Translations under genes and position numbers: made by a program | NCBI GenBank assembly: GCA_043228905.1 | Contig: JBHGNT010000007.1 | Location: 14,818,001 to 14,882,000 of the forward strand | Source of the DNA: Azolla caroliniana | Taxonomy: Eukaryota > Plantae > Polypodiophyta | Direction: 5' to 3' | DNA: 64,000 nucleotides | Notes under the pieces: generated by a model | Databases searched by the model: none | What the model saw: the letters and a program-made list of their open reading frames with translations, nothing else | What the model was told of the DNA's origin: nothing | Shown: positions 4,657 to 26,215 of the stretch, piece by piece | Numbering within the stretch: the first letter of the stretch is position 1 | Layout of the letters: each line of letters starts with the position of its first letter

Positions 4657-4681
4657 GGGTAAAAGCATGCGAGTGAAAACA
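4657..4681 (+). repeat. Left TIR
   Basis: GGGTAAAAGCATGCGAGTGAAAACA. Confidence 0.88.
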
Positions 4682-4907
4682 CTATTATAGCTAATTAGCT
4701 ACTAAAATGGCCATAGCTAATTAGCTATTTGTTTAGCTAGTCTTTTTTGTGGGAAAATCAAATATTTGAAAAACTAATTTATGAAAAAACTCAAATATTT
4801 GAACTTCTGTTTCAGACGTAGTGGAACTTGGGGAATATCACCATCATCTAAGGTCGACTTCAATGTCATCAATTTCTTGTTTAGCCTAAGTCTGATTTTG
4901 AACGCAG

Positions 4908-5162
4908 ATGGAGTACTCAGAGCACGAACGCAGACGTAGCTCCCGCAACAGCAAAAAATCGACATTGCAGATTGAGAGCTACAACACAACCCGCTCGATC
5001 ATCGTCCAGGTATGTTTCAGTTACAGAAACCCCAAACATTTGTTTTTTCTTTTTGACTACTGTCTGAACTTTGGTGCCGATTCATATTTCCCCAAAATCG
5101 AATAGGGCGAAGTCCTTGGAGTCCCATACAAGGATGTCTCGCAAATCGGGGAGTAGCAACAG
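4908..5162 (+). CDS. Putative first exons of the transposon cargo gene (4908-5009, 5106-5162)
   Basis: ATG at 4908, CAG|GTATG at 5010, TAG| at 5105, CAG|GTGTG at 5163, followed by T-rich intron-like DNA. Frame and start are uncertain. Confidence 0.35.
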
Positions 5163-5209
5163 GTGTGTTTATATTAGTTTTTTTGTGTTTAATCCTGTCT
5201 TTAGTGATG

Positions 5210-5500
5210 ATTGGGGTTTCTGATTGAAATTTCTGATTAGGGTTTTTGTTTATAAATTTCTTATTAGAATTTCTGATTAGGGTTTGTGATTGAAATTTCT
5301 GATTAGGGTTTTTGATTATAAATTTCTGATTAGAATTTCTGAATAGGGTTTCTGGTTACAAATTTTGATTACAAATTAGAATTTCTGAATAGGGTTTTTG
5401 TTTATAAATTTCTGCTTAGGATTTCTGATTAGGGTTTGTGATTGAAATTTTTGATTAGGGTTTCTGATTGAAATTTCTGATTAGGGTTTTTGATTATAAA
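5210..5500 (+). repeat. Degenerate ~20-bp tandem repeat (AAATTTCTGATTAGGGTTT) with telo-box-like core
   Basis: Repeated TTCTGATTAG(G/A) units, truncated by the LTR at 5501. Confidence 0.8.
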
Positions 5501-6175
5501 TGTTGGGATATCGGTCCCTCCGGATAGGATGTCCGGAGATGAATGACGGCAAGCCCGGTTACGGCTACGGAGCCGGATGATGAAGACCCGGCTACGGAGC
5601 CGGATGATGAAGACCCCGGCTACGGAGCCGGATGATGAAGACCCGGTTACGGAGCCGGATGATGAAGACTCGGCTACGGAGCCGGATGATGAAGACCCCG
5701 GCTACGGAGCCGGATGCAGGGACATATTTGTGAATATGTTTGCCAAGGGCCCTTGAGGCTATATTTGTAAATAGCCCGAAAGTCATATGTGTATAAATAT
5801 GACTTAGGGCAAACCGTTTTACTGTCGCTACTCATTTTTTCTGTTTTTCCACTCAAGAGGAGTGAAGAGAGAGCAGCCGAGAGAGAGATAGAGCGTGAGA
5901 GACGAGGAGGTCGTTGCCTCTGTGTATTACCGCCGCCTGTGGCGAAGACAGTGAGCTCAAGGTTGTTGCCTTGAAGCTTCACCATTGTACATCTCTGTTC
6001 ATAGTGATAGTTGGAGTCTTGCACTCCCGTGGTTTTTTCCCGTATAGGGTTTTCCACGCTAATCCCTGTGTTATCGTGTCTTTCTCTGTACTTCCCATTC
6101 TCTGCAACAACGATTCGTGTGTTTCCTCGGTTGTGGCCGAGTGGTGAAGGTGAATCGGAGCGTCGATTCGCAACA
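5501..6175 (+). repeat. LTR1, with ~28-bp tandem repeats in U3
   Basis: TGTTG...CAACA; (CCCGGCTACGGAGCCGGATGATGAAGA)n at about 5555-5716. Confidence 0.95.
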
Positions 6176-6205
6176 AAGTGGTATCAGAGCGAGTTGCTGC
6201 AGAAA

Positions 6206-9200
6206 ATGGAAGGCGGCGGCAGCGGACAGCCGGGGATGATGGTGCTGAATGCGCAGAATTACGCCGACTGGAAGATCAAGATGGAGGATCTTCTGATTGT
6301 TCGGGACCTGTACGAACCGATTGACAGGTCGGAAATACCGAAGGGGGTACTTGAGACGGAATGGAGGCTTCTGAACCGGAAAGCCGTTGCAACCATTCGG
6401 CAATACGTCGACGTGAGCGTTCTACAACATGTGGCGAACGACACCAACGCATATGAGATGTGGCGGAAGCTGTCGGGTCTCTACGAGAGGAAGAATGCGT
6501 TGAACCGGACCTCCCTGATGAGGAAGATAGTGAACCTCAAGTACCGCGACGGCGAGAGTATGGTGGAACACGTAAGCACGTTCATGGGATTTGTGAACCA
6601 GCTTGCGGCGATCAAGTTCCCGTTGGAGGATGCAATGCAAGCCATCATTCTGATGTGTACACTGCCGGAAAGCTGGGAGAACTTGGTGGTGACTCTCAGC
6701 ACCTCCTGCACCGAAGATAACTTGTCTCTACAAACGGTAAAGACAAGTATTTTGAACGAAGAAGCGCGTCGGAGAGATAAAGAACCGGCCTCCGACTCGA
6801 AGGCGCTGCTTACCGAATCGGAACGGGGAAGACAATGGAACCGGAGTCTGCAAAGACGGGAGAAGTCGGGGACCCGGTCGCAGTCAAGAGGAAGACCCAC
6901 ATGCTTCCACTGTGGGAAGCCGGGGCACTTCCGGAAGAATTGTCGGCATTACCGAAAAGACAACGGAGCCGACGACACCGATTCGAAGAAGTCACCGGAG
7001 AGAAACGGTGCATACCGGGGAGCCACGGACCGGAGAGGTCCGGATCGGCGAGGGCAGGACCGGAAAGGAACGACGGCACTCGCGGCAAGTGAAGAAGAGA
7101 TAATGCTCATTACTGAAGAGAGGGAGCTGAACCTTGCCGGTGAAGAGATGACCTGGGTGGTTGATTCCGGAGCGTCGTTCCACCTGACCCCGGAGAAGAA
7201 ATACTTCTCATCCTACACAGCCGGGGAGCACGGCTGTGTCCGGATGGGAAATGAAGGTACATGCCGGATTGCCGGCATAGGAGACGTGTGGCTGATGACA
7301 TCAACCGGATGCAAGATGCTGCTGAAGGATGTCCGACACGTTCCGGAGGTTCGATTGAACCTGATTTCGGCCGGGAGGCTAGACGATGAAGGCTACACGG
7401 GTAGCATCCGGAACGGTGTTATGAAGTTCAGCAAAGGGAGCCTGATAGTGGCTCGGGCCCGGAAAGTCAACACACTGTACCTTATGAATGCCCGGTTGTG
7501 TCCGGAAGAGTTGAACGTGGCAGCCGACACTGCCGGTGAGCTGTGGCACAAGACACTGTGCCACATGAGTGAGAAGGGGATGAAGAGGCTTGCAGAAGAC
7601 AACCTCATTCCAGTGAAGCATGTGCACCTGGAGAAGTGCACCGATTACCTGGCCGGTAAACAGAACCGAACCTCCTTCCACTCAAGGCCACCGACGAGAC
7701 GTAGTGCACCATTGGAGTTGGTGCACACTGATGTGTGTCAGGTAGAAACGAAGTCACATGGCGGAGCCCAGTACTTCGTAACATTCATAGATGACCACAG
7801 CCGGAAGCTGTGGACGGCACCGTTGAAGACAAAGGATCAAGTATTGTCCGTCTTCAAAGAACTCCACGCAAGAGTGGAAAGAGAATCCGGCAAGAAGCTG
7901 AAAGCACTACGAGCGGATAATGGAGGAGAATACCGAGGGCAGTTCGCGGAGTATTGCCGTTCGATGGGAATCTGGCTCGAGTTCACTGTGCCGAAGACGC
8001 CGGAACTGAACGGGCTGGCCGAGAGGATGAACCGGACCATAATGGAGAGGGTCCGGAGTATGCTGGCACATGCGAAATTACCCAAGGGATTTTGGGCTGA
8101 GGCAATGTCGACGGCGACATACGTGATAAACAGATCACCCTCAGTACCTTTGGACGGAGACACGCCACAGAGAGTGTGGACCGGTAAGGAAGTGTCCTAC
8201 CGGCATCTGAAGGTATTCGGGTGTCTCGCATATGTGCATGTGGCAAAGGACCGGAGAGGAAAGCTAGATCCAAAGACCCGGCCATGCATATTCCTCGGTT
8301 ACGGCGATGACGAGTTCGGCTACCGAGTATGGGACCCGGTCGACAGGAAGATATTCAGGAGTCGAGATATCATCTTCATGGAGGACAAGACACTCGCCGA
8401 CTGGGAGTCGGAGAAGAAGATGAAGAGCTCCAAGTCGACCGGTGAGGATCAACTCTACGAGGAGCAGTCCCGACCGGCAAGGGACCGGTTAACACTCGAA
8501 GATCCGGCCGAAGACGGTGAAGAAACAGAACCGGCCGAAGAAGATGAAAATGATACCGGAACCGGCCCTGATCCCGAAATGGATTCGGATGAAGAAGAAT
8601 CGGAAGAACCGGTTACCGAAGCTCCGGAACGGAGATATCCTCTAAGAGAGAGAAGGGCCCCCCGGAGATTTCCGGAACCAGAGCACGTGCTGCTAACCGA
8701 CGAGGGGGAGCCGGAGAGCTTTGAAGAAGCGAAGCATGACACCCATAGCCGCAGGTGGTTAAGTGCCATGCAGGAGGAGATGGATTCCCTGCATGAGAAC
8801 CACACATATGAACTTGTGGAGTTGCCGAAAGGAAAACGGGCACTCCGTAACAAGTGGGTGTTCAAGCTGAAACCGGGAGATGCCGGAAACCCCCCGAGAT
8901 ACAAAGCGAGGATCGTGGTGAAGGGGTTTCAACAGAAGAAGGGCGTCGACTTCGACGAGATATTTGCCCCGGTAGTGAAGATGACCTCCATCCGGATGGT
9001 GCTGAGCATAGCGGCAAGCATGGACCTCGAGGTAGAACAGATGGACGTGAAGACGACATTCCTTCACGGTGACCTCGAGGAAGAGATCTACATGCAGCAA
9101 CCGGAAGGATTCGAGAAGAAAGGGAAGGAGCACCTGGTATGCCGGTTGAAGAAGAGCCTTTACGGTCTGAAGCAGGCTCCCCGGCAATGGTACCGGAAGT

Positions 9201-10279
9201 TCGACTCCTTCATGACAGACGAAGGGTACCACAAAACGCAGTCCGATCACTGCGTGTTTGTGAAGAAGTTCGAAGGAGGAGACTTTCTAATACTCCTCCT
9301 GTACGTGGACGACATGTTGATCGTCGGACGGGACCAGGTCAAGATACGGATGCTGAAGAAGGCCCTTCACCGAACCTTCTCAATGAAAGACCTGGGTCCG
9401 GCGAGGCAAATACTAGGGATGCACATCATCCGAGACCGAAAGAAGAAGCAGTTGTGGCTGTCACAGGAGAAGTACGTGACAAAGGTGCTTCACCAGTTCA
9501 ACATGTCCGAGGCAAGACCGGTCGGGTCAACACTCCCGACAAACTGCAAGCTGTCCAGCAAGCAAAGCCCCAAGACAAAGGCTGAGAAGGAGGACATGAT
9601 GAAAGTACCATATGCCTCTGCCGTCGGGAGCTTGATGTACGCAATGGTGTGCACCCGACCGGACATAGGATATGCAGTCGGAGTGGTGAGCCGGTACATG
9701 AGCAACCCCGGCAAAGAGCATTGGAACGCGGCCAAGTGGATACTCCGATACCTGAAGGGCACGGCAAACGTGTGCCTCCGATTCGGCTCCGGTAAGCCCG
9801 AACTCGACGGCTTTACCGATTCGGATATGTCGGCTGATGCAGATACCAGCCGGTCCACATCAGGGTATGTGATGACGTATGCAGGGGGAGCTGTTTCATG
9901 GCAGTCGAGGCTGCAGAAGACGGTTGCGTTGTCAACCACGGAGGCGGAGTACATGGCGGCCGTTGAAGCCGGCAAGGAAATAATATGGATGAAGGACTTC
10001 ATTAGAGAGCTCGGTATCCGGCAGGAGGAGTACCGACTCTACTGCGACAGTCAGAGTGCCATCCACCTTGCAAAGAACGCTACCTACCATTCCCGGACGA
10101 AACACATCCAACGTAGATACCACTGGATCCGGGAAAGGATAGAAGACAAGGAGTTCGTGCTGACGAAGATCCACACGGACGAGAACGGGTCAGATATGCT
10201 GACCAAAGTACTCACACCCGACAAGCTGGAAGCATGCCGGAAGAGGATCGGATTGGAGAGACATCCCATGCCGAATTGA
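6206..10279 (+). CDS. gag-pol: Copia gag-pol polyprotein, copy 1 (open; integrase zinc finger carries C>Y)
   Basis: First ATG after the PBS (MEGGGSG); CCHC, DSGAS, DDE, YVDD, RNase H DSD/EAEY. Confidence 0.95.
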   Translation: MEGGGSGQPGMMVLNAQNYADWKIKMEDLLIVRDLYEPIDRSEIPKGVLETEWRLLNRKAVATIRQYVDVSVLQHVANDTNAYEMWRKLSGLYERKNALNRTSLMRKIVNLKYRDGESMVEHVSTFMGFVNQLAAIKFPLEDAMQAIILMCTLPESWENLVVTLSTSCTEDNLSLQTVKTSILNEEARRRDKEPASDSKALLTESERGRQWNRSLQRREKSGTRSQSRGRPTCFHCGKPGHFRKNCRHYRKDNGADDTDSKKSPERNGAYRGATDRRGPDRRGQDRKGTTALAASEEEIMLITEERELNLAGEEMTWVVDSGASFHLTPEKKYFSSYTAGEHGCVRMGNEGTCRIAGIGDVWLMTSTGCKMLLKDVRHVPEVRLNLISAGRLDDEGYTGSIRNGVMKFSKGSLIVARARKVNTLYLMNARLCPEELNVAADTAGELWHKTLCHMSEKGMKRLAEDNLIPVKHVHLEKCTDYLAGKQNRTSFHSRPPTRRSAPLELVHTDVCQVETKSHGGAQYFVTFIDDHSRKLWTAPLKTKDQVLSVFKELHARVERESGKKLKALRADNGGEYRGQFAEYCRSMGIWLEFTVPKTPELNGLAERMNRTIMERVRSMLAHAKLPKGFWAEAMSTATYVINRSPSVPLDGDTPQRVWTGKEVSYRHLKVFGCLAYVHVAKDRRGKLDPKTRPCIFLGYGDDEFGYRVWDPVDRKIFRSRDIIFMEDKTLADWESEKKMKSSKSTGEDQLYEEQSRPARDRLTLEDPAEDGEETEPAEEDENDTGTGPDPEMDSDEEESEEPVTEAPERRYPLRERRAPRRFPEPEHVLLTDEGEPESFEEAKHDTHSRRWLSAMQEEMDSLHENHTYELVELPKGKRALRNKWVFKLKPGDAGNPPRYKARIVVKGFQQKKGVDFDEIFAPVVKMTSIRMVLSIAASMDLEVEQMDVKTTFLHGDLEEEIYMQQPEGFEKKGKEHLVCRLKKSLYGLKQAPRQWYRKFDSFMTDEGYHKTQSDHCVFVKKFEGGDFLILLLYVDDMLIVGRDQVKIRMLKKALHRTFSMKDLGPARQILGMHIIRDRKKKQLWLSQEKYVTKVLHQFNMSEARPVGSTLPTNCKLSSKQSPKTKAEKEDMMKVPYASAVGSLMYAMVCTRPDIGYAVGVVSRYMSNPGKEHWNAAKWILRYLKGTANVCLRFGSGKPELDGFTDSDMSADADTSRSTSGYVMTYAGGAVSWQSRLQKTVALSTTEAEYMAAVEAGKEIIWMKDFIRELGIRQEEYRLYCDSQSAIHLAKNATYHSRTKHIQRRYHWIRERIEDKEFVLTKIHTDENGSDMLTKVLTPDKLEACRKRIGLERHPMPN

Positions 10280-10289
10280 AGGGGGAGTT

Positions 10290-10965
10290 TGTTGGGATAT
10301 CGGTCCCTCCGGATGGGATGTCCGGAGATGAATGACGGCAAGCCCGGTTACGGCTACGGAGCCGGATGATGAAGACCCGGCTACGGAGCCGGATGATGAA
10401 GACCCCGGCTACGGAGCCGGATGATGAAGACTCGGTTACGGAGCCGGATGATGAAGACCCGGCTACGGAGCCGGATGATGAAGACCCCGGCTACGGAGCC
10501 GGATGCAGGGACATATTTGTGAATATGTTTGCCAAGGGCCCTTGAGGCTATATTTGTAAATAGCCCGAAAGTCATATGTGTATAAATATGACTTAGGGCA
10601 AACAGTTTTACTGTCGCTACTCATTTTTTCTGTTTTTTCCACTCAAGAGGAGTGAAGAGAGAGCAGCCGAGAGAGAGATAGAGCGTGAGAGACGAGGAGG
10701 TCGTTGCCTCTGTGTATTACCGCCGCCTGTGGCGAAGACAGTGAGCTCAAGGTTGTTGCCTTGAAGCTTCACCATTGTACATCTCTGTTCATAGTGATAG
10801 TTGGAGTCTTGCACTCCCGTGGTTTTTTCCCGTATAGGGTTTTCCACGCTAATCCCTGTGTTATCGTGTCTTTCTCTGTACTTCCCATTCTCTGCAACAA
10901 CGATTCGTGTGTTTCCTCGGTTGTGGCCGAGTGGTGAAGGTGAATCGGAGCGTCGATTCGCAACA
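10290..10965 (+). repeat. LTR2, shared central LTR, nearly identical to LTR1
   Basis: Flanked by PPT GAAGGGGGAG upstream and PBS downstream. Confidence 0.95.
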
Positions 10966-10995
10966 AAGTGGTATCAGAGCGAGTTGCTGCAGAAA

Positions 10996-13900
10996 ATGGA
11001 AGGCGGCGGCAGCGGACAGCCGGGGATGATGGTGCTGAATGCGCAGAATTACGCCGACTGGAAGATCAAGATGGAGGATCTTCTGATTGTTCGGGACCTG
11101 TACGAACCGATTGACAGGTCGGAAATACCGAAGGGGGTACTTGAGACGGAATGGAGGCTTCTGAACCGGAAAGCCGTTGCAACCATTCGGCAATACGTCG
11201 ACGTGAGCGTTCTACAACATGTGGCGAACGACACCAACGCATATGAGATGTGGCGGAAGCTGTCGGGTCTCTACGAGAGGAAGAATGCGTTGAACCGGAC
11301 CTCCCTGATGAGGAAGATAGTGAACCTCAAGTACCGCGACGGCGAGAGTATGGTGGAACACGTAAGCACGTTCATGGGATTTGTGAACCAGCTTGCGGCG
11401 ATCAAGTTCCCGTTGGAGGATGCAATGCAAGCCATCATTCTGATGTGTACACTGCCGGAAAGCTGGGAGAACTTGGTGGTGACTCTCAGCACCTCCTGCA
11501 CCGAAGATAACTTGTCTCTACAAACGGTAAAGACAAGTATTTTGAACGAAGAAGCGCGTCGGAGAGATAAAGAACCGGCCTCCGACTCGAAGGCGCTGCT
11601 TACCGAATCGGAACGGGGAAGACAATGGAACCGGAGTCCGCAAAGACGGGAGAAGTCGAGGACCCGGTCGCAGTCAAGAGGAAGACCCACATGCTTCCAC
11701 TGTGGGAAGCCGGGGCACTTCCGGAAGAATTGTCGGCATTACCGAAAAGACAACGGAGCCGACGACACCGATTCGAAGAAGTCACCGGAGAGAAACGGTG
11801 CATACCGGGGAGCCACGGACCGGAGAGGTTCGGATCGGCGAGGGCAGGACCGGAAAGGAACAACGGCACTCGCGGCAAGTGAGGAAGAAATCATGCTCAT
11901 CACCGAAGAAGGTGAACTAAACGTTGCCGGCGATGAGACGACCTGGGTGGTCGATTCCGGAGCATCGTTCCACCTGACCCCGGAGAGAAGATACTTCTCA
12001 TCCTACACAGCCGGTGAGCATGGCTGTGTTCGGATGGGGAATGAAGGTACGTGCCGGATTGCCGGCATAGGAGACGTGTGGTTGACAACCCCGACCGGAT
12101 GCAAAATGCTGCTGAAGGATGTCCGACACGTTCCGGAGGTTCGATTGAACCTGATTTCGGCCGGGAGGCTAGACGATGAAGGCTACACAGGTAGCATCCG
12201 GAACGGCGTAATGAAGTTCAGCAAGGGGAGCCTGATAGTGGCTCGGGCCCGGAAAGACAACACACTGTACCTGATGAATGCCCGGTTATGTCCGGAAGAG
12301 CTGAATGTGGCAGCCGACACTGCCGGTGAGCTGTGGCACAAAAGACTGTGCCACATGAGTGAGAAGGGGATGAAGAGGCTTGCAGAAGACAACCTTATTC
12401 CAGTGAAGCAAGTGCACCTGGAGAAGTGCACCGATTGCCTGGCCGGTAAACAGAACCGAACCTCCTTCCATTCAAGGCCACCGACGAGACGTAGCGCACC
12501 ATTGGAGTTGGTGCACACTGATGTGTGTCAGGTAGAAACGAAGTCACATGGCGGAGCCCAGTACTTCGTAACATTCGTTGATGATCACAGTCGGAAGCTG
12601 TGGACGGCACCGTTGAAGACAAAGGACCAAGTGTTGTGCGTCTTCAAAGAACTCCACGCGAGAGTGGAAAGGGAATTCGGCAAGAAGCTGAAAGCGATAC
12701 GAGCGGATAACGGAGGGGAATACCGGGGGCAGTTCCAGGAGTACTGTCGCTCGAAGGGAATCCGGCTCGAGTTTACTGTGCCGAAGACGCCGGAACTGAA
12801 CGGACTGGCCGAGAGGATGAACCGGACCATAATGGAGAGGGTCCGGAGTATGCTGGCGCATGCGAAATTACCCAAGGGGTTTTGGGCTGAGGCAATGTCG
12901 ACGGCGACATATGTGATAAATAGATCACCCTCAGTACCCTTGGACGGAGACACGCCGCAGAAAGTGTGGACCGGTAAGGAAGTGTCCTACCGGCACCTGA
13001 AGGTGTTCGGGTGTCTCGCATACGTGCATGTGGCAAAGGACCGGAGAGGAAAGCTAGATCCAAAGACCCGGGCATGCATATTCCTCGGTTACGGCGACGA
13101 TGAGTTCGGCTACCGAGTATGGGACCCGGTCGACAAGAAGATATTCAGGAGCCGAGATATCATCTTCATGGAGGACAAGACACTCGCCGACTGGGAGTCG
13201 GAGAAGAAGATGAAGAGCTCCAAGTCGACCGGTGAGGATCAACTCTACAAGGAGCAGTCCCGACCGGCAAGAGACCGGTTAGCACTCGAGGATCCGGCCG
13301 AAGACGGTGAAGAAACAGAACCGGCCGAAGAAGATGAAAATGATACCGGAACCGGCCCCGATCCCGAAATGGATTCGGATGAAGAAGAATCGGAAGAACC
13401 GGTTACCGAAGCTCCGGAACGGAGATACCCTCTAAGAGAGAGAAGGCCCCCCCGGAGATTCCCGGAACCAGAGCACGTGTTGCTAACCGACGAGGGGGAG
13501 CCGGAGAGCTTTGAAGAAGCAAAGCATGACACCCAGAGCCGCAGGTGGTTGAGTGCCATGCAGGACGAGATGGATTCCCTGCATGAGAACCACACATATG
13601 AACTTGTGGAGTTGCCGAAAGGAAAGCGGGCACTTCGAAACAAGTGGGTGTTCAAGCTGAAACCGGGAGATGCCGGAAACCCCCCGAGATACAAAGCCAG
13701 GATCGTGGTGAAGGGGTTCCAGCAGAAGAAGGGTGTGGACTTCGACGAGATATTTGCCCCGGTAGTGAAGATGACCTCCATCCGAACGGTGCTGAGCATA
13801 GCGGCAAGCATGGACCTCGAGGTAGAACAGATGGACGTGAAGACGGCATTCCTTCACGGTGACCTCGATGAAGAGATCTACATGCAGCAACCGGAAGGAT

Positions 13901-15069
13901 TCGAGAAGAAAGGGAAGGAGCACCTGGTATGCCGATTGAAGAAGAGCCTTTACGGACTGAAGCAGGCTCCCCGGCAATGGTACCGGAAGTTCGACTCCTT
14001 CATGACCGACGAAGGGTACCTCAAAACGCAGTCCGACCACTGCGTGTTTGTGAAGAAGTTCGAAGGAGGAGACTTCCTAATACTCCTCCTATACGTGGAC
14101 GACATGTTGATCGTCGGACGAGACCAGGTCAAGATACGGATGCTGAAGAAGGCTCTTCACCGAACCTTCTCAATGAAGGACTTGGGTCCGGCGAGGCAAA
14201 TACTAGGGATGCACATCATCCGGGACCGGAGCAAGAAGCAGTTGTGGCTGTCACAGGAGAAGTACGTGACGAAGGTGCTTCACCGGTTTAACATGTCGGA
14301 AGCAAGACCGGTCGGATCGACCCTCCCGGCAAACTGCAAGCTGTCCAGCAAGCAAAGTCCCAAGACAAAGGCTGAAAAGGAGGATATGATGAAAGTACCG
14401 TATGCCTCAGCCGTCGGAAGCTTGATGTACGCCATGGTGTGTACGAGACCGGACATCGGATATGCAGTCGGAGTGGTTAGCCGGTACATGAGCAATCCCG
14501 GCAAAGAGCATTGGAATGCGGCCAAGTGGATACTCCGATACCTGAAGGGCACGGCAAACGTGTGCCTCCGATTCGGCTCCGGTAAGCCCGAACTCGACGG
14601 CTTCACCGATTCGGATATGTCGGCTGATGCAGATACCAGCCGGTCCACATCAGGGTATGTGATGACGTATGCAGGGGGAGCCGTTTCGTGGCAGTCGAGG
14701 CTGCAGAAGATGGTTGCGTTGTCAACCACGGAGGCGGAGTACATGGCAGCTGTTGAAGCCGGTAAGGAAATAATATGGATGAAGGACTTCATTAGAGAGC
14801 TCGGTATCCAGCAGGAGGAGTACCGACTCTACTGTGACAGTCAGAGTGCCATCCACCTTGCGAAGAACGCGGCCTACCATTCCCGGACGAAACACATCCA
14901 GCGTAGATACCACTGGATCCGGGAAAGGATAGAAGACAAGGAGTTCGTGCTGACGAAGATCCACACGGACGAGAACGGGTCGGATATGCTGACCAAGGTG
15001 CTCACACCCGACAAGCTGGAAGCATGCCGGAAGAGGATCGGATTGGAGAGACATCCCATGCCGAAGTGA
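10996..15069 (+). CDS. gag-pol: Copia gag-pol polyprotein, copy 2 (core motifs intact)
   Basis: HKRLCH..CTDC, DDE, DVKTAFLHG, YVDD, RNase H. Confidence 0.95.
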   Translation: MEGGGSGQPGMMVLNAQNYADWKIKMEDLLIVRDLYEPIDRSEIPKGVLETEWRLLNRKAVATIRQYVDVSVLQHVANDTNAYEMWRKLSGLYERKNALNRTSLMRKIVNLKYRDGESMVEHVSTFMGFVNQLAAIKFPLEDAMQAIILMCTLPESWENLVVTLSTSCTEDNLSLQTVKTSILNEEARRRDKEPASDSKALLTESERGRQWNRSPQRREKSRTRSQSRGRPTCFHCGKPGHFRKNCRHYRKDNGADDTDSKKSPERNGAYRGATDRRGSDRRGQDRKGTTALAASEEEIMLITEEGELNVAGDETTWVVDSGASFHLTPERRYFSSYTAGEHGCVRMGNEGTCRIAGIGDVWLTTPTGCKMLLKDVRHVPEVRLNLISAGRLDDEGYTGSIRNGVMKFSKGSLIVARARKDNTLYLMNARLCPEELNVAADTAGELWHKRLCHMSEKGMKRLAEDNLIPVKQVHLEKCTDCLAGKQNRTSFHSRPPTRRSAPLELVHTDVCQVETKSHGGAQYFVTFVDDHSRKLWTAPLKTKDQVLCVFKELHARVEREFGKKLKAIRADNGGEYRGQFQEYCRSKGIRLEFTVPKTPELNGLAERMNRTIMERVRSMLAHAKLPKGFWAEAMSTATYVINRSPSVPLDGDTPQKVWTGKEVSYRHLKVFGCLAYVHVAKDRRGKLDPKTRACIFLGYGDDEFGYRVWDPVDKKIFRSRDIIFMEDKTLADWESEKKMKSSKSTGEDQLYKEQSRPARDRLALEDPAEDGEETEPAEEDENDTGTGPDPEMDSDEEESEEPVTEAPERRYPLRERRPPRRFPEPEHVLLTDEGEPESFEEAKHDTQSRRWLSAMQDEMDSLHENHTYELVELPKGKRALRNKWVFKLKPGDAGNPPRYKARIVVKGFQQKKGVDFDEIFAPVVKMTSIRTVLSIAASMDLEVEQMDVKTAFLHGDLDEEIYMQQPEGFEKKGKEHLVCRLKKSLYGLKQAPRQWYRKFDSFMTDEGYLKTQSDHCVFVKKFEGGDFLILLLYVDDMLIVGRDQVKIRMLKKALHRTFSMKDLGPARQILGMHIIRDRSKKQLWLSQEKYVTKVLHRFNMSEARPVGSTLPANCKLSSKQSPKTKAEKEDMMKVPYASAVGSLMYAMVCTRPDIGYAVGVVSRYMSNPGKEHWNAAKWILRYLKGTANVCLRFGSGKPELDGFTDSDMSADADTSRSTSGYVMTYAGGAVSWQSRLQKMVALSTTEAEYMAAVEAGKEIIWMKDFIRELGIQQEEYRLYCDSQSAIHLAKNAAYHSRTKHIQRRYHWIRERIEDKEFVLTKIHTDENGSDMLTKVLTPDKLEACRKRIGLERHPMPK

Positions 15070-15079
15070 TGGGGGAGTT

Positions 15080-15694
15080 TGTTGGGTTTACGGTCCCTTT
15101 CGGATGGGATGGTCGGATGTCGAAGATGAATACCGACAAGCCCGGTTTCGGTTTCGGAACCGGATGATGAAGACCCCGGTTTCGGAACCGGATGACGAAT
15201 GTACCCGGAGAGAGATCCGGATGCAGGAACATATCCGTGAATATGTTTGCTAAGGGCCCCCTGAGGCTATAGTTGTAAATAGCCCCAAAGTCATATATGT
15301 ATAAATATGACTTAGGGCAAACAGTTTTAAGCTTGCTAATCATTTTTCTGTTTTTCCACTCTAGAGGAGTGAAGAGAGAGAGCAGCCGCGAGAGAGAGAG
15401 AGGTATAGAGCGTGAGAGAGGAAGAGGTCGACGCCTCTGTGTATTTCCGCCGCCTGTGGCGAGGACAGCGAGCTCAAGGTCGTCGCCTTGCAGCTCGCCA
15501 TTGTATACTTCTCTGTACAGTGTTGGTTTGGAGTCTTGTACTCCCGTGGTTTTTCCCGTCTAGGGTTTTCCACGTTAATCCCTGTGTGTTCGCGTTTTGT
15601 TTCTCTTTGTGGTTCCTATTTTCTACTGCATCGATTCGCGCTTACTCGGTTGTGGCCGAGGGAAGAAGGTTAATCGAAGCGTTGATTCCCAACA
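15080..15694 (+). repeat. LTR3, diverged subfamily type
   Basis: TGTTGGG...CCCAACA; homologous to LTR1/2 but clearly different; no PBS follows. Confidence 0.9.
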
Positions 15695-16823: not shown

Positions 16824-18585
16824 TAAGCTTAGTCTTTTCTAATTAGCTATCCTACTAGCTAATTAGCTACTGGCAGCTAATGAGCTACTAGCTAATTAGC
16901 TATCCTAGTAGCTAATTAGCTATGGTACTAGCTAATTAGCTAGTACCATAGTTGTGTAAAAAAGCTAAATAGCTATCCTACTAGCTAATTAGCCACTGGC
17001 AACTAATTAGCTATCCTAGTAACTAATTAGCTACTGCCATAGTTGTGTAAAGTAGCTAATAAGCTATCCTAGTAGCTAATTAGCTATGGTACTAGCTAAT
17101 TAGCTAGTACCATAGTTGTGTAAAAAAGCTAATTAGCTATCCTACTAGCTAATTAGCTACTCGCAACTAATTAGCTATCCTACTAGCGAATTAGCTATCC
17201 TAGTAGCTAATTAGCTACTGGCAACTAATTAGCTATCCTACTAGCTAATTAGCTATCATAGTAGCTAATTAGCTACTGACATAGTTGTGTAAAGTAGCTA
17301 ATAAGCTATCCTAGTAGCTAATTAGCTACTGGCAGCTAATTAGCTGTCCTAGTAGCTAATAAGCTATCCTAGCTACTACATAGTTGAGAAAGTAGCTAAT
17401 TAGCTTTCATTGTAGCTAATTAGCTATCCTAGCTACCACCATAGTTAGTAAAGTAGCTAATTAGCTATCCTAGCTACTACCATAGTTGTGTAAAGTAGCT
17501 AATTAGCTATCCTAGTAGCTAATTAGCTATCCTAATTAGCTATGGTACTAGCTAATTAGCTAGTACCATAGTTGTGTAAAAAAGCTAAATAGCTATCCTA
17601 CTAGCTAATTAGCCACTGGCAACTAATTAGCTATCCTAGTAACTAATTAGCTACTGCCATAGTTGTGTAAAGTAGCTAATAAGCTATCCTAGTAGCTAAT
17701 TAGCTACTAGCAGCTAATTAGCTATCCTAGTAGCTAATTAGCTATCCTACTAGCTAATTAGCTAGTACCATAGTTGTGTAAAAAAGCTAATTAGCTATCC
17801 TACTAGCTAATTAGCTACTGGCAACTAATTAGCTATCCTAGTAGCTAATTAGTTATCCTACTAGCTAATTAGCTGCTGGCAACTAATTAGCTATCCTACT
17901 AGCGAATTAGCTATCCTAGTAGCTAATTAGCTACTGGCAACTAATTAGCTATCCTACTAGCTAATTAGCTATCATAGTAGCTAATTAGCTACTGCCATAG
18001 TTGTGTAAAGTAGCTAATAAGTTGTCCTAGTAGCTAATTAGCTACTGGCAGCTAATTAGCTATCCTAGTAGCTAATTAGCTGTCCTAGTAGCTAATAAGC
18101 TATCCTAGCTACTACATAGTTGAGAAAGTAGCTAATTAGCTTTCATTGTAGCTAATTAGCTATCCTAGCTACTACCATAGTTAGTAAAGTAGCTAATTAG
18201 CTATCCTAGCTACTACCATAGTTAGTAAAGTAGCTAATTAGCTATCCTAGCTACTACCATAGTTAGTAAAGTAGCTAATTAGCTATCCTCGCTACTACCA
18301 TAGTTCGTAAAGTAGCTAATTAGCTATCCTAGCTACTCCCATAGTTAGTAAAGTAGCTAATTAGCTATCCTAGCTACTACCATAGTTGAGTAAAGTAGCT
18401 AATTAGCTATCCTAGCTACTACCATAGTTGAGTAAAGTAGCTAATTAGCTATCCTAACTACTACCATAGTTGAGTAAAGTACCTAATTAGCTATCATACT
18501 AGCTAATTAGCTATCGTACTAGCTAATTAGCTATCCTAGCTTCTACCCCAGTTTAGTAAAGTAGTTAATTAGCTATCCTAAATAA
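16815..18585. repeat. Satellite of palindromic TAGCTAATTAGCTA units (array 1, with higher-order duplications)
   Basis: Dozens of AGCTAATTAGCT cores; block ~16915-17085 recurs at ~17535-17705. Confidence 0.95.
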
Positions 18586-18602
18586 CTGTCATGTTATTGT
18601 AG

Positions 18603-19138
18603 AATCTTGTGGATTAAGGACGGCACATGATGTGTCTGGTGCTGATGATGCTGCAACAGATGAGGATACTACTGCCAATGTGGCTGAAAGTAAGAGTCCT
18701 GCTATCACATCTCCTTCAGATCAGCTGCACCCTATTCTTTTGGAACAGTGTATTGAATTAGGCAACGATGTGAAATGCCATGAAATAGTGGAAACAACAT
18801 GTAAAACTGAGGTTCACAACAACAGTGTTTATGAACACTTGATGCAACATTTCTTCGAGTCTCAAGACCTTGATTCCACCCCACCGAGCCCAACTACTGA
18901 AAATGTCCAAACAGATCCCTCTGTACTTGAAAAGCTAGTTCAAGAAACGGCTGATGTGCAATTAGCTGCTGAGGCGATGGGAAGGTTGTCGGAGGAGGAC
19001 ACACTTGCGCATTGGGTGAAAGAAGCAAGGCTAAATGGGGAACCAACCAGAAAAAGGCTGAAGAAGGGGCCACGATCGGGAACAAGACCAGTTACTCGGT
19101 CAAGGGGCCCAGACGTAGTGGAGCGAAATACTGTTTAG
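18603..19138 (+). CDS. Cargo exon/ORF, acidic region with basic NLS-like C-terminus (RKRLKK)
   Basis: Acceptor TGTAG at 18602 is phase-compatible with the donor at 16804; open to 19138; internal donor GTAAG at 18690. Confidence 0.5.
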
Positions 19139-19387
19139 TTGGATATGATTGTTAGCTTAGGGATTTTGCTAGGGTTTTATGAAGTTTTACTATCCTGTTG
19201 GACAAGTAAAACCTCAGATTGGTTGTTGCTTGATCCACATTATGTAATGGAACTCTATGATGTTTTTCCAAGATAATTTGAAGAGTGTTGTTCTATGACT
19301 GAAACTCTTTGATGTTCAGGATATTGTTTTGTGAGACTATTAGTTACTTTGTGAGTGTGAATATGTTGGTGTTTTCTGATGTTGCAG

Positions 19388-20442
19388 AGTCTAAAGGGTT
19401 TGATTCTATTGCTCGTAAGGCCAATGGCAGTGTGGATACTGTTGATGTTGCGGCATGTTTAAAGGGCCCCATCTTGAAAGTAGATGTAGCAACTGACACA
19501 AGTGATCTGGTCACACAAGTTGATCAAGCATGTAGCATGGATGACTTGGTGTTGCAAGTAGATGCAACATGTAGCACGGATGACTTGGTGTTGCAGGTAG
19601 ATGCAGCATGTAGCACGGATGACTTGGTGTTGCAGGTAGATGCAACATGTGATACCAGTGGACTGATATCGAGTAGATCAGTAGCTACATGCACTGAGGT
19701 AATCCAAGGATTGATAACTAAGTCGACAAAACAAGAGCACCAGAATGTGAAGCTAGGCCCAACACAGTCGACTAGGGGTTTAAAGAGGAAAAGGACACCA
19801 GTTGTGTCAGCCGAACCTGAGCTGATTGAGATTGATCGTATCCTACCAGAAAATGGTGTAACAGCGGCTCAGTTTCAGGAATGGAAACCTAAACCACTAG
19901 AAGTCGAAAGAAGAGCCTTGATCTTGGAGCTTGATAAAGTCTTGATGAGTGTGAGATATATGCAGCCAAGGAGGGACGCAAATAAGTTTCTAGAGTGGGC
20001 TGTGGAATACTTTGATTTGTTTATTTGGAGTGAAAAACCAAAATCAGATGTGTGGAAGTGTTTGGCAAGATTCTTCCCAAAATGGCGAAGTCGTTTTAAA
20101 GGTCAATGGGCACGAGAAAATTGTGAGCAAATGGAAGCTGCAAGATTCAAGAGACTTTCTGATTTTTGGGCTACTTGGCCTGAATATAATGCCGACAATA
20201 CATTGATTTTGGATACAGAACATTTCCGACACTACTTCAATATTCGGAGATGCTGTCTCATTCTACCCGAGGAAATGCCTGAACAGTACCTGGTGCAAAT
20301 AGTGAGCTGCCAACTAGGTGCATGGTTGTGGACTCCATACCGAGCTCAATATGCGGATAATATATGTAGACTCGTTCCACTGACTAGCAAGAGCTTAGCT
20401 GTTTATAGGAGATTTGTAGACATTTCCAATGGTAATTTATAA
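19388..20442 (+). CDS. Cargo exon: 13-aa repeats plus degenerate FCP1/SCP-like (NIF, HAD) phosphatase-fold domain
   Basis: RALILELDKVL (cf. LVLDLDxTL), FLEWAVEYFDLFIWS, KRLSDFW, NTLILD; acceptor TGCAG at 19387; DDLVLQVDAxCST repeats at about 19510-19650. Confidence 0.65.
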
Positions 20443-20789
20443 ATATGTAAAGAGATGGCATTATTCAATGAAGAATTTAATTACTTGTTCCCACTGTACT
20501 TATCTACTGTGTAATTTGAGGAATATGTTGCAGATTGTTGATTTCATGCTATTGATGACTATTTAGCTATTGACAGCTAATTAGCTGCATTTGTACAACT
20601 AATTAGCTACTGATGACTATTTCGCTATAACTTATAACTTAAAACTTAACAAAAAAGACATGATTTTATTGAGAAAGAAGCACAGAAAGTAGACTGTATA
20701 CAAGAAATTGATTCCAAACGAATTTATTTAACTGTTTTCGCGAAATACATGTTTGTTTTACAAGAGAACATGGTAAGTGCTACTTGTAG

Positions 20790-23700
20790 CTACAAATTCC
20801 ATGGCATACTATTGTAAATACATTCATACACATTAGCACCAACAGTGTATAAACCAGAGCAGCTATTGTATTCTGACATTGGGACGTTGATGCACCTGAC
20901 CAAATGAGAGTACATATACGCCGCTGGTTTGTCTTCTAACAGCCTGTACACATATTCGTAGTCATCTAGTTTTGCATAAAAAATGCCTTCGATGTAGAAT
21001 GTCCCGGCAGATACAAAATTTCCCCATGCATCTACAATATTCTGCCTTGCGCACTGTTTACTAACCGTGCACTTTAATATATAGAAATCAGCACCCTGTG
21101 AATTGCCTTCTTCAGCATTTACAGCGAAGTTATCCCCAACGTTCAGGACATCACTCAAAGTATCTCCAAGTCCCTCATATGTGAAGTCAGCAATCTGCCC
21201 TGTTTCTCCATCAACTGCTTCCTTATCATTCAGAGTGTGATACTCCCAATTTTGAATGTATGCTTTGTTTAGACAATATCTCCAATTTCCCTGCACACAA
21301 TGGAAGCAAAAACAAGTCAATTCTCTAACCGCAATACAATGACCATCCAACCTGGAATAACCGCGAACAGCATGCAGAGATCGCAATTCGGGAATTCCTT
21401 GGCACTCCCAGGTCTTCTCCCTATTTACTTCATCTATCTTCACTTCCCAAAATTCACGTTTGATATCTCGGACTTGCGAGGAATAAACACCTGTGGCACT
21501 CGTTGACATATTTGTTCTTAAAAATTCAACTACATGTGATGCACAATTCATGTGCACACCATCTGTCTTTAGTTGTTCATGGGTAAGTGCCTGCTTTATA
21601 ACAGCCCCTGCACCATCATGTTCACCTTTACCATGGCCAGACCCAAAAAAATTCCATCTCATCTCCAAACCTGTTATAGCAGGATACCTCCCCACAAAAT
21701 AAAATGGACGTCGAGCCTTGAATTGTGACGCAGCTCCGTCAGACCAGACCCAATGTTGAGTAAGCTCCAAACGTTGAGCTAATAACCACTGCCAATGTAA
21801 CTTAAAACAGTGTTGGACGAACAAGGTATCATGCTTCTTATCATCGGAAATAAAGAAATGAATTACTTTTTTAACATCACCTGAAACTCGAAAATATGTT
21901 ATGTGCACAAAAATGGTTACCTGAACTGAACACCAATGCATAGATTGAATTTCATTCTGCTGCTTGAAAGTATAATTCTCTGCGAAATCTACTACTAAGA
22001 CTACTACATCATTTGGGAAATCAGATATGCAAGTCTTAAACTGATGGGCCTGCCATGAATAAATGAAGTTGTGTTTAATGAACTTTCCTAGAGATACTAC
22101 AAACAGAGACACCAAATCCCTTGGTTTAAGCATCTTTCGAACTAGATCCTTTCTTTTACACACCTTTCCTTCGAAATTGGTGTTCACTGACTCAAATAAC
22201 TTCACAGAGATCAATATTTCACTACTCAATTCATTTGGACACCACCTAAATCTAGTAGGGCCACAATCTTGACATAAACCCATGACACATTTGCGTCAGT
22301 TTCTCTCGGACACAATATTGAATCTAATAAATAACTCATGGAAGAGATAACGTGCTCAGATGATTTACACTCCTCTTGCGGGCTTGATCGACAGATTGGG
22401 CACCCACATGTGCAAACTGTATTAGTTAGGGATGCGCTATGGTGACGTAGTAGATTAACAGAGTCCTTCAGAAAACCCATCTGTACATGGTAAATGCAAC
22501 AACATGTGTATCGATCCTTTAAGCGTCTCACAAAGTGTGGCTTAAGAGACTCGAATGTTCGTAGTTGAACTTTGATAATTGGATGCATTCGTTTGAACCT
22601 AATAAATAAATCGACCTGCGTAATAAAGGGGAATTAGTTATTCTCGTAACTAGCTAACTATCCTAGTAGCTAATTAGCTATTCTAGTAGCTAGTTAGCTA
22701 TTCTAGTAGCTAATTAGCTATCATGGTAGCTAATTAGCTGTCCTAGTAGCTAATTAGCTATCATGGTAGCTAATTAGCTATCATGGTAGCTAATTAGCTA
22801 TCATGGTAGCTAATTAGCTGTCCTAGTAGCTAATTAGCTGTCCTGGTAGCTAATTAGCTATCATGGTAGCTAATTAGCTGTCCTAGTAGCTAATTAGCTG
22901 TCCTAGTAGCTAATTAGTTGTCCTGGTAGCTAATTAGCTATCATGGTAGCTAATTAGTTGTCCTAGTAGCTAATTAGCTATCATGGTAGCTAATTAGCTA
23001 TTCTAGTAGCTAATTAGCTATCATGGTAGCTAATTAGATGTCGTAGTAGCTAATTAGCTATCATGGTAGCTAATTAGCTGTCCTAGTAGCTAATTAGTTG
23101 TCCTAGTAGCTAATTAGCTATCATGGTAGCTAATTAGCTGCTCTAGTAGCTAATTAGCTATCATGGTAGCTAATTAGCTATCATGGTGGCTAATTAGCTG
23201 TCCTAGTAACTAATTAGCTATCATGGTAGCTAATTAGCTGGTCTAGTAGCTAATTAGCTATAATGGTGGCTAATTAGCTATCCTAACTACTTAGCTATCA
23301 TGGTAGCTAATTAGCTATCATGGTGGCTAATTAGCTGTCCTAGTAACTAATTAGCTATCATGGTAGCTAATTAGCTATAATGGTGGCTAATTAGCTATCC
23401 TAACTAATTAGCTATCATGGTAGCGAATTAGCTGGTCTTGTAGCTAATTAGCTATCACGGTGGCTAATTAGCTGTCCTAGTAAGCTAATTAGCTATCATG
23501 GTAGCTAATTAGCTTTCCTAGTAGCTAATTAGCTGGTAATAACGAAATAACAAACTAGCTACCATGATAGCTAACTAGCTTCTAGTACAACTAATTATCT
23601 AGTAGTACCTAAATTAGCTATTGAGAATAGCTAATTAGCTATTGAGAATAGCTAATTAGCTATCATGGTAGTAGTTATTGAGAGTAGCCAGTTACCTATG

Positions 23701-24786
23701 TAGTAGCTATCATAGTAGCTAATTAGCTATCATGGTAGCTAATTAGCTTTCCTAGTAGCTAATTAGCTGGTAATAACGAAATAGCTAACTAGCTACCATG
23801 ATAGCTAACTAGCTAGCAGTACAGCTAATTATCTGGTAGTACCTAAATTAGCTATTGAGAATAGCTAATTAGCTATCATGGTAGTAACTATTGAGAGTAG
23901 CTAGTTACCTATGTAGTAGCTGTCCTAGTAGCTAACTGAGGTAAATGTAACTGATAAGCTAATTAGCTTTTCTGCTAACTGAGCTAATTAACTTTCCGAG
24001 TAGAGTCAAAACAAATGTTGAGATAAATGTAAATACCTGAGGTACATCAAGAAGATGAATGGGATGCTCCTCGTATTGATTTCTTCCAACACGTTTCCTG
24101 CATAAATCCTTTTTATTGGGTGAAACCCTACTCTCATTAGTCCAAAACATTGTGATTACATCCTTGATTTCAAATGTTATGGGTGTCATTGGCTTACATC
24201 TTGTAGTTAGCTTTAGTAGACTAGTTCCTTCACCCGAGGAAATTATACGGTTCATTGTATTGTACACTGTTTTTCTACTAACACCAATTACCTTAGATAG
24301 CTCACTGATGTTTATATCATCAACATCACTATTAAGTAACATCATTAGACTAGACCTTTTTAAGACAAGATCATCTTCTGACCTGCTCATGGATACGAAA
24401 CTATTACGAAGATTATTTACTAAAATAGATGATATGTTTGCATTAAGACCATCACAATCAACTAAGTCCTTTATCGATGGATCATTACATATTCCATAAA
24501 GTACTACCTTCTTTTCTTCATTGCTGATGTGCTTGGTTTGAACATTGAAATAGTCTACAACCTTTCTCTCTATGATGGTAGTCGCATTACTTACATTCTC
24601 AGCTAAACTATCCTTACCTTTACTGAGTGTGGCTTTCGTATCCTTCAACAATTGACGATGTTTCCTTTTTTTTTCTGCCCAATAGTTTCGTATGGCTTGT
24701 TGTGTCCTGATAACATCATCCCTATCCTTATGATCATTGAGGGGTAATTCTAAACACCCTTCTTCCCCTTCCATTTGGCTGGACAT
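20790..24786 (-). pseudogene. Sola2-like DDD transposase, two exons (24786-24037 and 22615-20790), one frameshift near 22285
   Basis: VDFAENY, EIQSMHW, ISDDKKHD, WSDGAASQFK, WNFFGSGHGKGEHDG; Cys-rich N- and C-terminal parts; phase-0 intron CAG|GTATTT...CGCAG|GTC. Confidence 0.85.
22650..23985. repeat. Palindromic satellite array 2 (20-bp period) in the transposase intron
   Basis: (TCATGGTAGCTAATTAGCTA / TCCTAGTAGCTAATTAGCTG)n in exact 20-bp register from 22661 to 23280. Confidence 0.95.
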
Positions 24787-25121
24787 GTTAAAACCCTAAA
24801 TTTCCAGAACAAAAAACAAGTATTAAAGATGGCTATGGGCAACAACAATACACAAAAATATTCCACACAATACACAAGATTAGACACAACAATACACAAG
24901 ATAATCAATAGACAGAAAAGTTATTGCAATCCAAGACCGAACAGTAGAGGATTTCACTCCGTTGGATCCAACAGTTGAGGAGGCGATCCAAGACCGACCA
25001 ATGGCAACAACTGAGTGTAGAATGTTGCCGTTGGATGAGTGAACTCCGTCAAATCGAAATGTGGAAGCAATCCGGGACTGGACAGTAGTGGCAACTGAGT
25101 ATAGAATGATGGCAATGGAGG

Positions 25122-25858
25122 AGAGAACCCCGTCAGATTGAACAGTTACCGATGATGCTTGAAACGCACATAGAAGGCACTTGAGAATAGAGTGGCATAG
25201 AGAAGAGAACCCCGTCAGATTGAACAGTTACCAATGATGCTTGAAACGCACAGTAGCGGCCCCTGAGTGAGAGTGGAAAAGAGAAGAGAACCCCGTCAGA
25301 TTGACTAGCTCTTTGATTATGCTTGGAACGCACAGTAGCAGCCCCTGAGTGTAGAGTGGCAAAGAGAAGAGAACCCCGTCAGATTGAACAGCTCTTTGAT
25401 GATTCTTGGAACGCACAGCAGCGGCCCCTGAGTGTAGAGTGGCATAGAGAAGAGAACCCCCTCAGATTGAACAACTCTTTGATGATGCTTGGAACGCACA
25501 GTAATGGCCCCTGAGTGTAGAGTGGAACAGAGAAGAGAACCCCCTCAAATTGAACAGCTCTTTGATGATGCTTGGAACGCACAGTAATGGCCTCTGAGTG
25601 TAGAGTGTCACAGAGAAGAGAACCCCGTCAGATTGAGCAGCTCTTTGATGATGCTTGGAACGCACAGTAGCGGCCCCTGAGTGTAGAGTGGCACACAGAA
25701 GAGAACCCCGTCAGATTGAACAGCTCTTTGATGATGCTTGGAATGCACAGTAGTGGCCCCTGAGTGTAGAGTGTCACAGAGAAGAGAACCCCGTCAGATT
25801 GAGCAGCTCTTTGATGATGCTTGGAACGCACAGTAGCGGCCCCTCAGTGTAGAGTGGC
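25122..25858. repeat. 83-bp tandem repeat, about 9 copies, upstream of the transposase
   Basis: GAGAACCCCGTCAGATTGAACAG..TGATGCTTGGAACGCACAG..GAGTGTAGAGTGG recurs every 81-83 bp. Confidence 0.93.
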
Positions 25859-26186
25859 GGCAGGTGGACTCGATAGGGTTTAGCAGCAGTGGTAGCAACT
25901 AACCCACAGTACTCAACTAGAGATGGCCTACGTGATGTGGCAAAGGATCATGCATAATGGACCTAGGAATTCGATATATAATTTATGGTACACATTTATG
26001 GTGCACACATCAATTTATGTTGCACATTTATGGCACTCATTTACATATGTAATTAAAACACTCTAGTATTTTCAATGGTAGTTTTTTGCATACTTAATTT
26101 ATTAATGATGGCTTTTTACTAAAATGACTATTTATCAATGGTAGCTTTTTGCATAGCTAATTAGCTATGTCAAGGACATAGCTAAT

Positions 26187-26211
26187 TGTTTCCACTCGCA
26201 TGCTTTCACCG
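26187..26211 (-). repeat. Right TIR
   Basis: Reverse complement is CGGTGAAAGCATGCGAGTGGAAACA. Confidence 0.88.
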
Positions 26212-26215
26212 ATAT

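Follow-up and report, generated by a model that had tools for sequence, protein, structure and literature searches.

The stretch of DNA analyzed here (64,000 nucleotides of Azolla caroliniana contig JBHGNT010000007.1, positions 14,818,001 to 14,882,000; hereafter the window, whose numbering is used throughout) contains a DNA transposon at positions 4657-26211. The element carries two genes that face each other: a transposase gene on the minus strand, and a second gene on the plus strand whose product we call the helper protein. It is bounded by 25-bp terminal inverted repeats (TIRs); the left repeat (GGGTAAAAGCATGCGAGTGAAAACA, 4657..4681, plus strand) pairs with the right one (26187..26211, minus strand), and matches its reverse complement at 22 of 25 positions. 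Immediately outside the TIRs lie the two copies of a target site duplication (TSD), ATAT, at 4653..4656 and 26212..26215. The host site of insertion was a Copia pol, the two halves of which now flank the element. Excision in silico of the element together with one ATAT restores the pol frame (LKGTSNMCLQFGSG), and the restored frame is colinear with an intact, related Copia gag-pol of 1422 aa (LKGTANVCLRFGSG).

Almost half of the interval is foreign to the transposon proper. A nested tandem Copia with the structure LTR-int-LTR-int-LTR (long terminal repeats, LTRs, alternating with internal regions) occupies 5501..15694 on the plus strand (10,194 bp, 47% of the interval) and has two intact gag-pol open reading frames (ORFs) of 1422 aa. 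Its first two LTRs are approximately 99% alike, while the third is approximately 82% alike to those two, and no target duplication is present at its ends, where the flanks are ATAAA and CGATG. The nested Copia has a CpG observed/expected (o/e) ratio of 1.00, as compared to 0.4-0.6 in the exons and arms of the surrounding transposon. It looks like a young recombinant of two insertions. LTR divergence and mismatched flanks both fit a recombination between two separate Copia elements; such an event would have deleted the intervening transposon DNA, and the start of the helper N-domain was probably lost with it. When the nested Copia is subtracted, the transposon proper measures 11.4 kb out of 21.5 kb, and a related TIR-bounded element (L001, below) measures 12.4 kb.

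Taken as a whole, the explanation that we consider reasonably probable is that the interval is one inactive copy of a Sola2-superfamily transposon that has two genes and moves by cut-and-paste. The copy is able to make neither transposase nor helper protein, because the transposase is frameshifted (16 bp are missing) and the N-terminal part of the helper has been lost. An earlier note, made from the letters of the window, had recognized the TIRs, the ATAT that splits a Copia pol, a minus-strand DDD transposase, arrays of a 14-bp palindrome and a likeness to Sola2, and all of these hold up in the comparisons described here. The same note had read the locus as a candidate anti-silencing system; in this copy, both genes are defective. 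The nested Copia, the 16-bp frameshift deletion and the loss of the helper N-domain were absent from that note. The copy is thus real, well bounded and dead, and the interesting part is the architecture at the level of the family.

Two facing genes

Transposases of this family are approximately 860 aa in length and are encoded by two exons, one bearing a helix-turn-helix (HTH) and the other the DDD core. In the window, exon 1 (24037..24786, minus strand, 250 codons) has a weak HTH match, and is followed by an inferred intron of 1421 nt (22616..24036) that encloses one of the two palindrome arrays (array 2, below). GT (24036) and AG (22616) form the intron borders, the phase is 0 on both sides, and the nine codons ahead of the ATG of the core ORF are open. 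The 5' part of exon 2 (22293..22615, minus strand) is Cys-rich and is in a shifted frame with respect to the catalytic core (20790..22292, minus strand), which carries the DDD motifs DFAENY, WSDG and GHGKGEHDG. The break lies where 16 bp are absent, at about 22292: another copy, P0001 (96% identical), has this ORF intact at 604 aa, and its residues 1-99 and 105-604 align here in different frames; contigs from other sequencing runs have 16 additional bases at 22290-22292. Residues D206, D289 and D330 (P0001 numbering) are invariant or nearly so among 38 homologues.

Sola2 is a superfamily of DNA transposons reportedly going back to Bao, Jurka and Kapitonov in 2009. Between Sola2_DFa-2 and the window's core, four motif blocks correspond in identical order (MDFKEN/VDFAENY, FSD...H/ISDD..H, WSDGAKHFK/WSDGAASQFK and HGKSDVD/HGKGEHD), and are separated by 50/36/43 residues in Sola2_DFa-2 and 47/35/41 residues here. 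The TSD of Sola2 is AWWT, with ATAT among the sites named (PMC3627910), and the Sola2 elements of dictyostelids are 12-15 kb long and carry an additional gene, Fanzor (PMC3627910). The window's transposase very probably belongs to Sola2, because its TSD and its motif blocks, with the distances between them, agree with those of published Sola2 elements. The likeness extends to the length of the transposase (approximately 860-890 aa), the 4-bp AT-rich TSD, the short imperfect TIRs, and an overall size of 10-15 kb with one additional gene. What differs is the nature of that gene, which here encodes an N-domain, a coiled coil and a RING-like finger (plus a NIF-like domain) rather than Fanzor and is kept across land-plant lineages, and the presence of lineage-specific palindrome arrays that fill inferred introns.

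Pfam assigned no family to the transposase, and a profile of the 38 transposases had no match among PDB sequences. The AlphaFold model of the core (pLDDT 84) gave only weak Foldseek matches, and every one of these is an RNase H-like nuclease (NurA, the P element transposase, and integrase cores at probabilities of up to 0.97), and the nearest Atlas clusters are hypothetical proteins of cnidarians, molluscs and chordates. The core is under constraint, with a dN/dS of 0.20, and a pN/pS of 0.21 when a contig from a different species is compared (20 changes are synonymous, 16 non-synonymous). A separate observation concerns the HTH exon, for which dN/dS is 1.7 (23959-24786 versus L010 4733-5560), based on few changes and a dS of 0.02 as compared to 0.11 in the core. 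This value could mean exchange between copies or rapid change of the DNA-binding part, and is not used as evidence here.

The helper gene faces the transposase gene, with all of its parts on the plus strand. A putative first exon (4909..5010) has an ATG 252 bp from the TIR and a GT donor but no homology support; in L001, the helper ORF begins approximately 240 bp from the TIR. The next recognizable part is a remnant of the N-domain exon (15695..16012), which begins at profile position 82-88, right at the Copia junction, so that the gene here is without the first ~87 positions of this conserved domain, whose expected location is now Copia. It is followed by an exon that encodes the end of a coiled coil and a RING-H2-like finger (16443..16820; CIAC...PCNHTYHLLC...C-x3-C), a middle exon ORF that is acidic, has a basic KRLKKG tail and terminates in a stop (18632..19138), and a NIF-like exon of the FCP1/SCP type (19309..20442). 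Given the stop, a helper isoform without the NIF-like domain is conceivable. The middle exon is kept in L010 and L011, with dN/dS values of 0.47-0.58. For both genes, splicing is deduced from the GT/AG sites, the frame phase and comparison with homologues. Three putative RNA runs, which are possibly DNA, cover exon-like parts only, and since they derive partly from another species, this coverage may reflect conservation rather than expression.

The NIF-like domain exceeds the Pfam PF03031 cut-off of 21.8 bits in four lineages (30.1 in the window, 38.2 in L001, 33.8 in Adiantum P0124, 28.9 in L009 and 44.4 in P0187); a phmmer search of PDB with the L001 NIF ORF gave nothing. The NIF family includes the FCP1/SCP1 phosphatases of the RNA polymerase C-terminal domain, which have the catalytic motif DxDx(T/V), as well as inactive relatives such as TIM50. 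The domain described here resembles FCP1/SCP1 in its scores (28.9-44.4 bits across the four lineages), and differs from them at the catalytic motif, which is degenerate in all 18 copies alignable there. Within the window's subfamily the replacement is ELDKV, invariant in 5 of 5 members down to 66% identity, while outside of it there are D[LM]NG[VLA] in 12 members and GINGV in one. Each of the main forms is without one of the two catalytic Asp residues, a different one in each group, which favors a binding role for this domain over an enzymatic one. In SCP1 itself, a change of Asp+2 to Asn serves experimentally as a substrate trap.

The finger is called RING-H2-like rather than RING because its last ligand pair is spaced C-x3-C or C-x4-C, not C-x2-C, and because Pfam RING scores for the helper protein are under the cut-offs; the first six ligands follow the canonical pattern (C-x2-C...C-x-H-x2-H-x2-C). 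The modeled finger of L001 superposes on the RING of HRD1 (TM 0.73, rmsd 1.8 Å, 54 columns, 31% identity), and also on RNF12, RNF165 and RNF38. Overall, the L001 helper model (pLDDT 82) has a compact N-domain (pLDDT >90), a coiled coil that is long and antiparallel, and a small zinc finger. Two fold searches left the N-domain unplaced, as matches to the coiled coil and to the RING took up their lists.

Palindrome arrays and the family

Copies of the palindrome TAGCTAATTAGCTA with no more than one mismatch number 102, where 0 are expected, and all of them are within 4688-26167, i.e., inside the element. Three of them are subterminal: two near the left end (4688..4727), 32 and 58 bp from it, and one near the right end (26154..26167), 45 bp from it and followed by a half-site at approximately 26179-26190. 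The bulk of the copies form two arrays. Array 1 (16839..18580, 56 sites) lies in an inferred helper-gene intron, and its periods vary (20, 33, 38 and 41 bp), with a spacing of 20 bp being the commonest. Array 2 (22632..23887, 43 sites) lies in the inferred transposase intron, and 27 of its 42 spacings are exactly 20 bp. A short, degenerate, palindrome-related repeat (20548..20628) is situated between the 3' ends of the two genes, a position that holds palindromes in L002 and L009 also. Within the arrays, the palindrome positions are better preserved than the spacers. The arrays are nearly free of CpG (o/e 0.11-0.15), as compared to the ratio of 0.4-0.6 in the exons.

Two other tandem repeats are found in the element. 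An 83-bp repeat (25118..25858, 9 copies with 90% matches) lies upstream of the transposase, between its start and the right TIR; it is without the palindrome motif, and is possibly a promoter region. A 13-bp repeat of the TTTCTGATTAGAA type (or ...GGG), with approximately 22 copies, is in the left arm (5217..5496), where it is interrupted by the Copia, and its region has zero CpG.

The arrangement is not peculiar to this copy. L001, a 44.6-kb contig, contains a TIR-bounded element whose transposase is 53% identical to that of the window. Its TIR of 23 bp (GGGTATATGCATG) resembles the window's, with GGGTA...GCATG common to both, and facing its transposase are a 551-aa ORF (N-domain, coiled coil and RING-like finger) and a 410-aa ORF with a Pfam NIF domain. 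The full layout is found also in Adiantum capillus-veneris (L002), in L009 (transposase 47% identical) and in L010, a metagenome contig of the window's subfamily with an intact 568-aa transposase ORF, and is present as a remnant in A. nelumboides (L012). Adiantum and the other fern-like contigs conserve the same order, namely the HTH exon, an intron array, the transposase core, and the facing gene with its own intron array. In the liverwort Calypogeia fissa (L005), and likewise on two other contigs (L006 and L008), profile searches identify N-domain/RING exons that face the transposase, without NIF. Overall, the layout persists across lineages with transposases 40-53% identical to the window's, and the second gene that the earlier note had described here is thus present in related copies that are either TIR-bounded or known from contigs.

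The palindrome itself is different in each of the four lineages with arrays: TAGCTAATTAGCTA in the window, L010 and L011; GGTAGCTACC in L001, L002 and L003; TGCTATATAGCA in L009; and AGGACTNNAGTCCT in Calypogeia. In fern elements the arrays occupy corresponding sites, i.e., the gap between HTH exon and core and a position within the helper gene, and loci of three of the four fern lineages have a few palindromes between the two 3' ends as well. The Calypogeia arrays are located differently, with one in the helper-gene region and the other just beyond the end of the transposase gene.

Several observations bear on the age and constraint of the helper gene. In comparisons among three copies of the subfamily to which the window belongs, dN/dS for the NIF exon is 0.41-0.53 over 340-370 codons (Fisher p values of 3e-9, 3.5e-8 and 0.02), so that this exon is not evolving neutrally. 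The helper is approximately 25-27% identical between the window and L001, as compared to 53% for the transposase core, and is therefore the faster evolving of the two. When the N-domain served as the profile in an exhaustive search, 253 representative clusters came up at E ≤1e-3 and 122 at ≤1e-10; eight clusters that were looked up include "hypothetical proteins" of ferns and liverworts, and among 62 long clusters, 21 have a RING region and 7 a NIF domain. Word-level searches with two NIF exons gave just 6 and 4 relatives, with all of the located ones inside such elements, and no close host paralogue of the helper gene was found in them. Copies are numerous: 3258 contigs of one DNA run match 6 kb of the element, a third of them at ≥99%. 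By these sequence comparisons, the family is large and recently constrained.

Some gene models in databases combine parts of these elements with other sequences. Two (P0163, from A. nelumboides, and P0170) fuse the helper N-domain with retrotransposon gag or protease domains. The A. nelumboides model P0187, of 752 aa, spans 49 kb and was probably chained together across elements, which makes it weak support for a single transcript; the annotation probably links neighboring repeats.

Proposed self-binding and its alternatives

On the simplest reading, the palindrome would be a binding site for one of the element's own proteins, because the motif adjoins both TIRs and changes together with the proteins of the element. 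The symmetry of the site suggests that a dimer binds it, and the HTH exon is the sole candidate DNA-binding part seen. We propose that a dimeric element-encoded protein, with the HTH part of the transposase as the likeliest candidate, binds the palindrome and so marks "self" ends, and that the arrays, with 20 bp (about two helical turns) between sites, would load many copies of this protein onto the element. The RING/NIF-like protein would then be a required cofactor that acts through protein contacts, such as E2 recruitment and phosphoprotein binding, and not through phosphatase catalysis. The outcome may be assembly of a transpososome, copy-specific regulation or a change of chromatin, and the motif's position beside both TIRs points first to a role in transposition.

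Elements that pair a transposase with a second protein are familiar from other superfamilies. In En/Spm (CACTA), TnpD is the transposase and TnpA binds a short motif that is repeated subterminally at both ends; TnpA also counteracts methylation of the element, and both proteins derive from one alternatively spliced unit. The system described here shares with En/Spm the second protein and the repeated short motifs, but the En/Spm motifs are subterminal only, whereas the present element has genes that face each other and keeps its main arrays in inferred introns. In PIF/Harbinger, the transposase requires a second element-encoded protein, a Myb/SANT-like DNA binder, throughout the superfamily. 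The family-wide retention of a second gene is common to both systems, but PIF/Harbinger is not known to have RING, NIF or palindrome arrays.

A number of observations weigh against the self-binding explanation or its parts. The comparison with Sola2 was made by eye, against the Sola2_DFa-2 sequence of PMC3627910, and the HTH_11 match of exon 1 (E 6e-5) is under the Pfam cut-off. It could be the helper protein, via its N-domain, that binds the palindrome instead. Splice joints are absent from the three putative RNA runs. L001 is flanked by TCCA and TTCA, which do not amount to a clean AT-rich TSD, and L006 and L008 have no palindrome arrays. The two genes are also found apart, with a transposase homologue in Cryptomeria japonica (L004, LOC131074642) that has no helper within 10 kb, and a helper homologue in Riccia sorocarpa (L013, KAL3688661.1) that has no transposase within 10 kb. 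These last two loci could be decayed elements or host-recruited genes; the Riccia protein is named "LOV domain-containing" in UniRef.

Among the alternatives, most attention is due to anti-silencing, which the earlier note had proposed by analogy with VANDAL/VANC. Binding of VANC from VANDAL21, with a resulting loss of methylation, is established for these Mutator-like elements of Arabidopsis (PMC5735166, PMC10398659), and what VANDAL21 has in common with the present family is an accessory protein together with short tandem non-coding motifs that differ among relatives (PMC5735166, PMC10398659). By analogy, the helper would bind the non-coding arrays of its own family and remove or block silent chromatin, and might, through its RING and pseudo-phosphatase domains, ubiquitylate or sequester a host silencing or polymerase factor. 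We consider this unlikely, though its probability is not negligible, and hold the same view of its more general form, in which arrays and RING/pseudo-phosphatase protein constitute a self-recognition module of land-plant Sola2 elements that targets host modification of this kind only to copies of its own family. The differences in tandem motif between related lineages, which are as seen for VANC targets, speak for it, as do the near absence of CpG from the arrays and a helper gene that is old and constrained, yet faster evolving than the transposase. Furthermore, of the findings that the earlier note had named as contrary to its proposal (copies that lack the second gene, neutral evolution, origin from a host-gene fragment, a known family with the same layout), none turned up in the searches reported here. 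The superfamily and proteins are unrelated to those of VANDAL/VANC, however: the element is not Mutator-like and its transposase is not MULE-like, and Pfam recognizes only NIF and a weak RING in the helper, with neither similarity to VANC nor a DNA-binding domain. In addition, the palindrome here is found beside both TIRs, a position that would usually be taken to indicate a role in transposition. Of the parallel with VANC, then, the lineage-specific tandem motifs stand while the kinship of proteins does not, and a self-binding platform is the simpler reading. If the anti-silencing reading were true, such a system would have arisen independently of VANDAL/VANC, and would have been retained from liverworts to ferns.

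The arrays might alternatively act as RNA, or have no function at all, and we regard each of these as improbable. Once transcribed, intron arrays could form hairpins or pair with one another, and give rise to small RNAs that silence or self-limit the family. Both arrays are within inferred transcription units, on opposite strands, and 301 nt of array 2, folded as RNA, gives a single hairpin that is nearly perfect (-148.9 kcal/mol, z -15.6), but any palindrome array folds in this way, and the fold is no evidence of use. The CpG ratio in the exons and arms could reflect past methylation; however, the three putative RNA runs contain no array transcript (depth 0 at 23095-23894, and ≤0.5 from 22695 on), and the RNA explanation accounts neither for the subterminal copies nor for the retention of arrays in every fern lineage. 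As functionless slippage expansions of subterminal transposase-binding repeats, with an unrelated helper gene, the arrays would be expected to vary, and array periods and lengths do vary, as seen in array 1, with a shorter array in L010 and none in L006 and L008. Such drift does not sit well with the presence of arrays in both the transposase intron and the helper gene at all four fern loci that cover them, in spite of the changed motif, with the better preservation of palindromes than of spacers, or with the exact 20-bp spacing that predominates in array 2. Least probable by far is that the RING/NIF gene is a recently captured host-gene fragment (Pack-type cargo). NIF and RING are common host domains, but the few relatives of the NIF exons that could be located are all in such elements, the gene is found together with transposases that are 40-53% identical to the window's, and also in liverworts, and dN/dS is below 1. 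Recent capture is thus contradicted by an old, family-wide and constrained second gene. For the same reason, the convergent multi-exon cargo gene of the earlier note stands as a facing RING/NIF-like gene (NIF 30.1 bits against the cut-off of 21.8) but not as cargo, and its splicing is inferred only.

Within the literature searched on Sola2 together with plants, ferns or RING, which did not cover the original Sola paper, neither this layout nor a family that has it is described; Sola2 is treated there as a superfamily defined by its transposase. A conserved second gene with self-specific arrays would alter annotation in very large genomes of ferns and gymnosperms, where element exons are now annotated as "hypothetical proteins" (e.g., in Adiantum nelumboides and Riccia sorocarpa). 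According to a conifer genome preprint, Sola2 is the most abundant superfamily of DNA transposons there (10.64898/2026.07.23.736688). The family would offer another, independent system in which to test how transposons recognize their own copies and handle host silencing, and the matched pairs of protein and motif from four lineages make such testing straightforward.

Elsewhere in the window there are additional repeat pairs with 90-99% identity, which represent other LTR elements and duplications. These include 27157-27547, 32381-32859 and 60861-61286, as well as 46088-46731 with 56728-59064, and 50882-52688 with 56112-58321.

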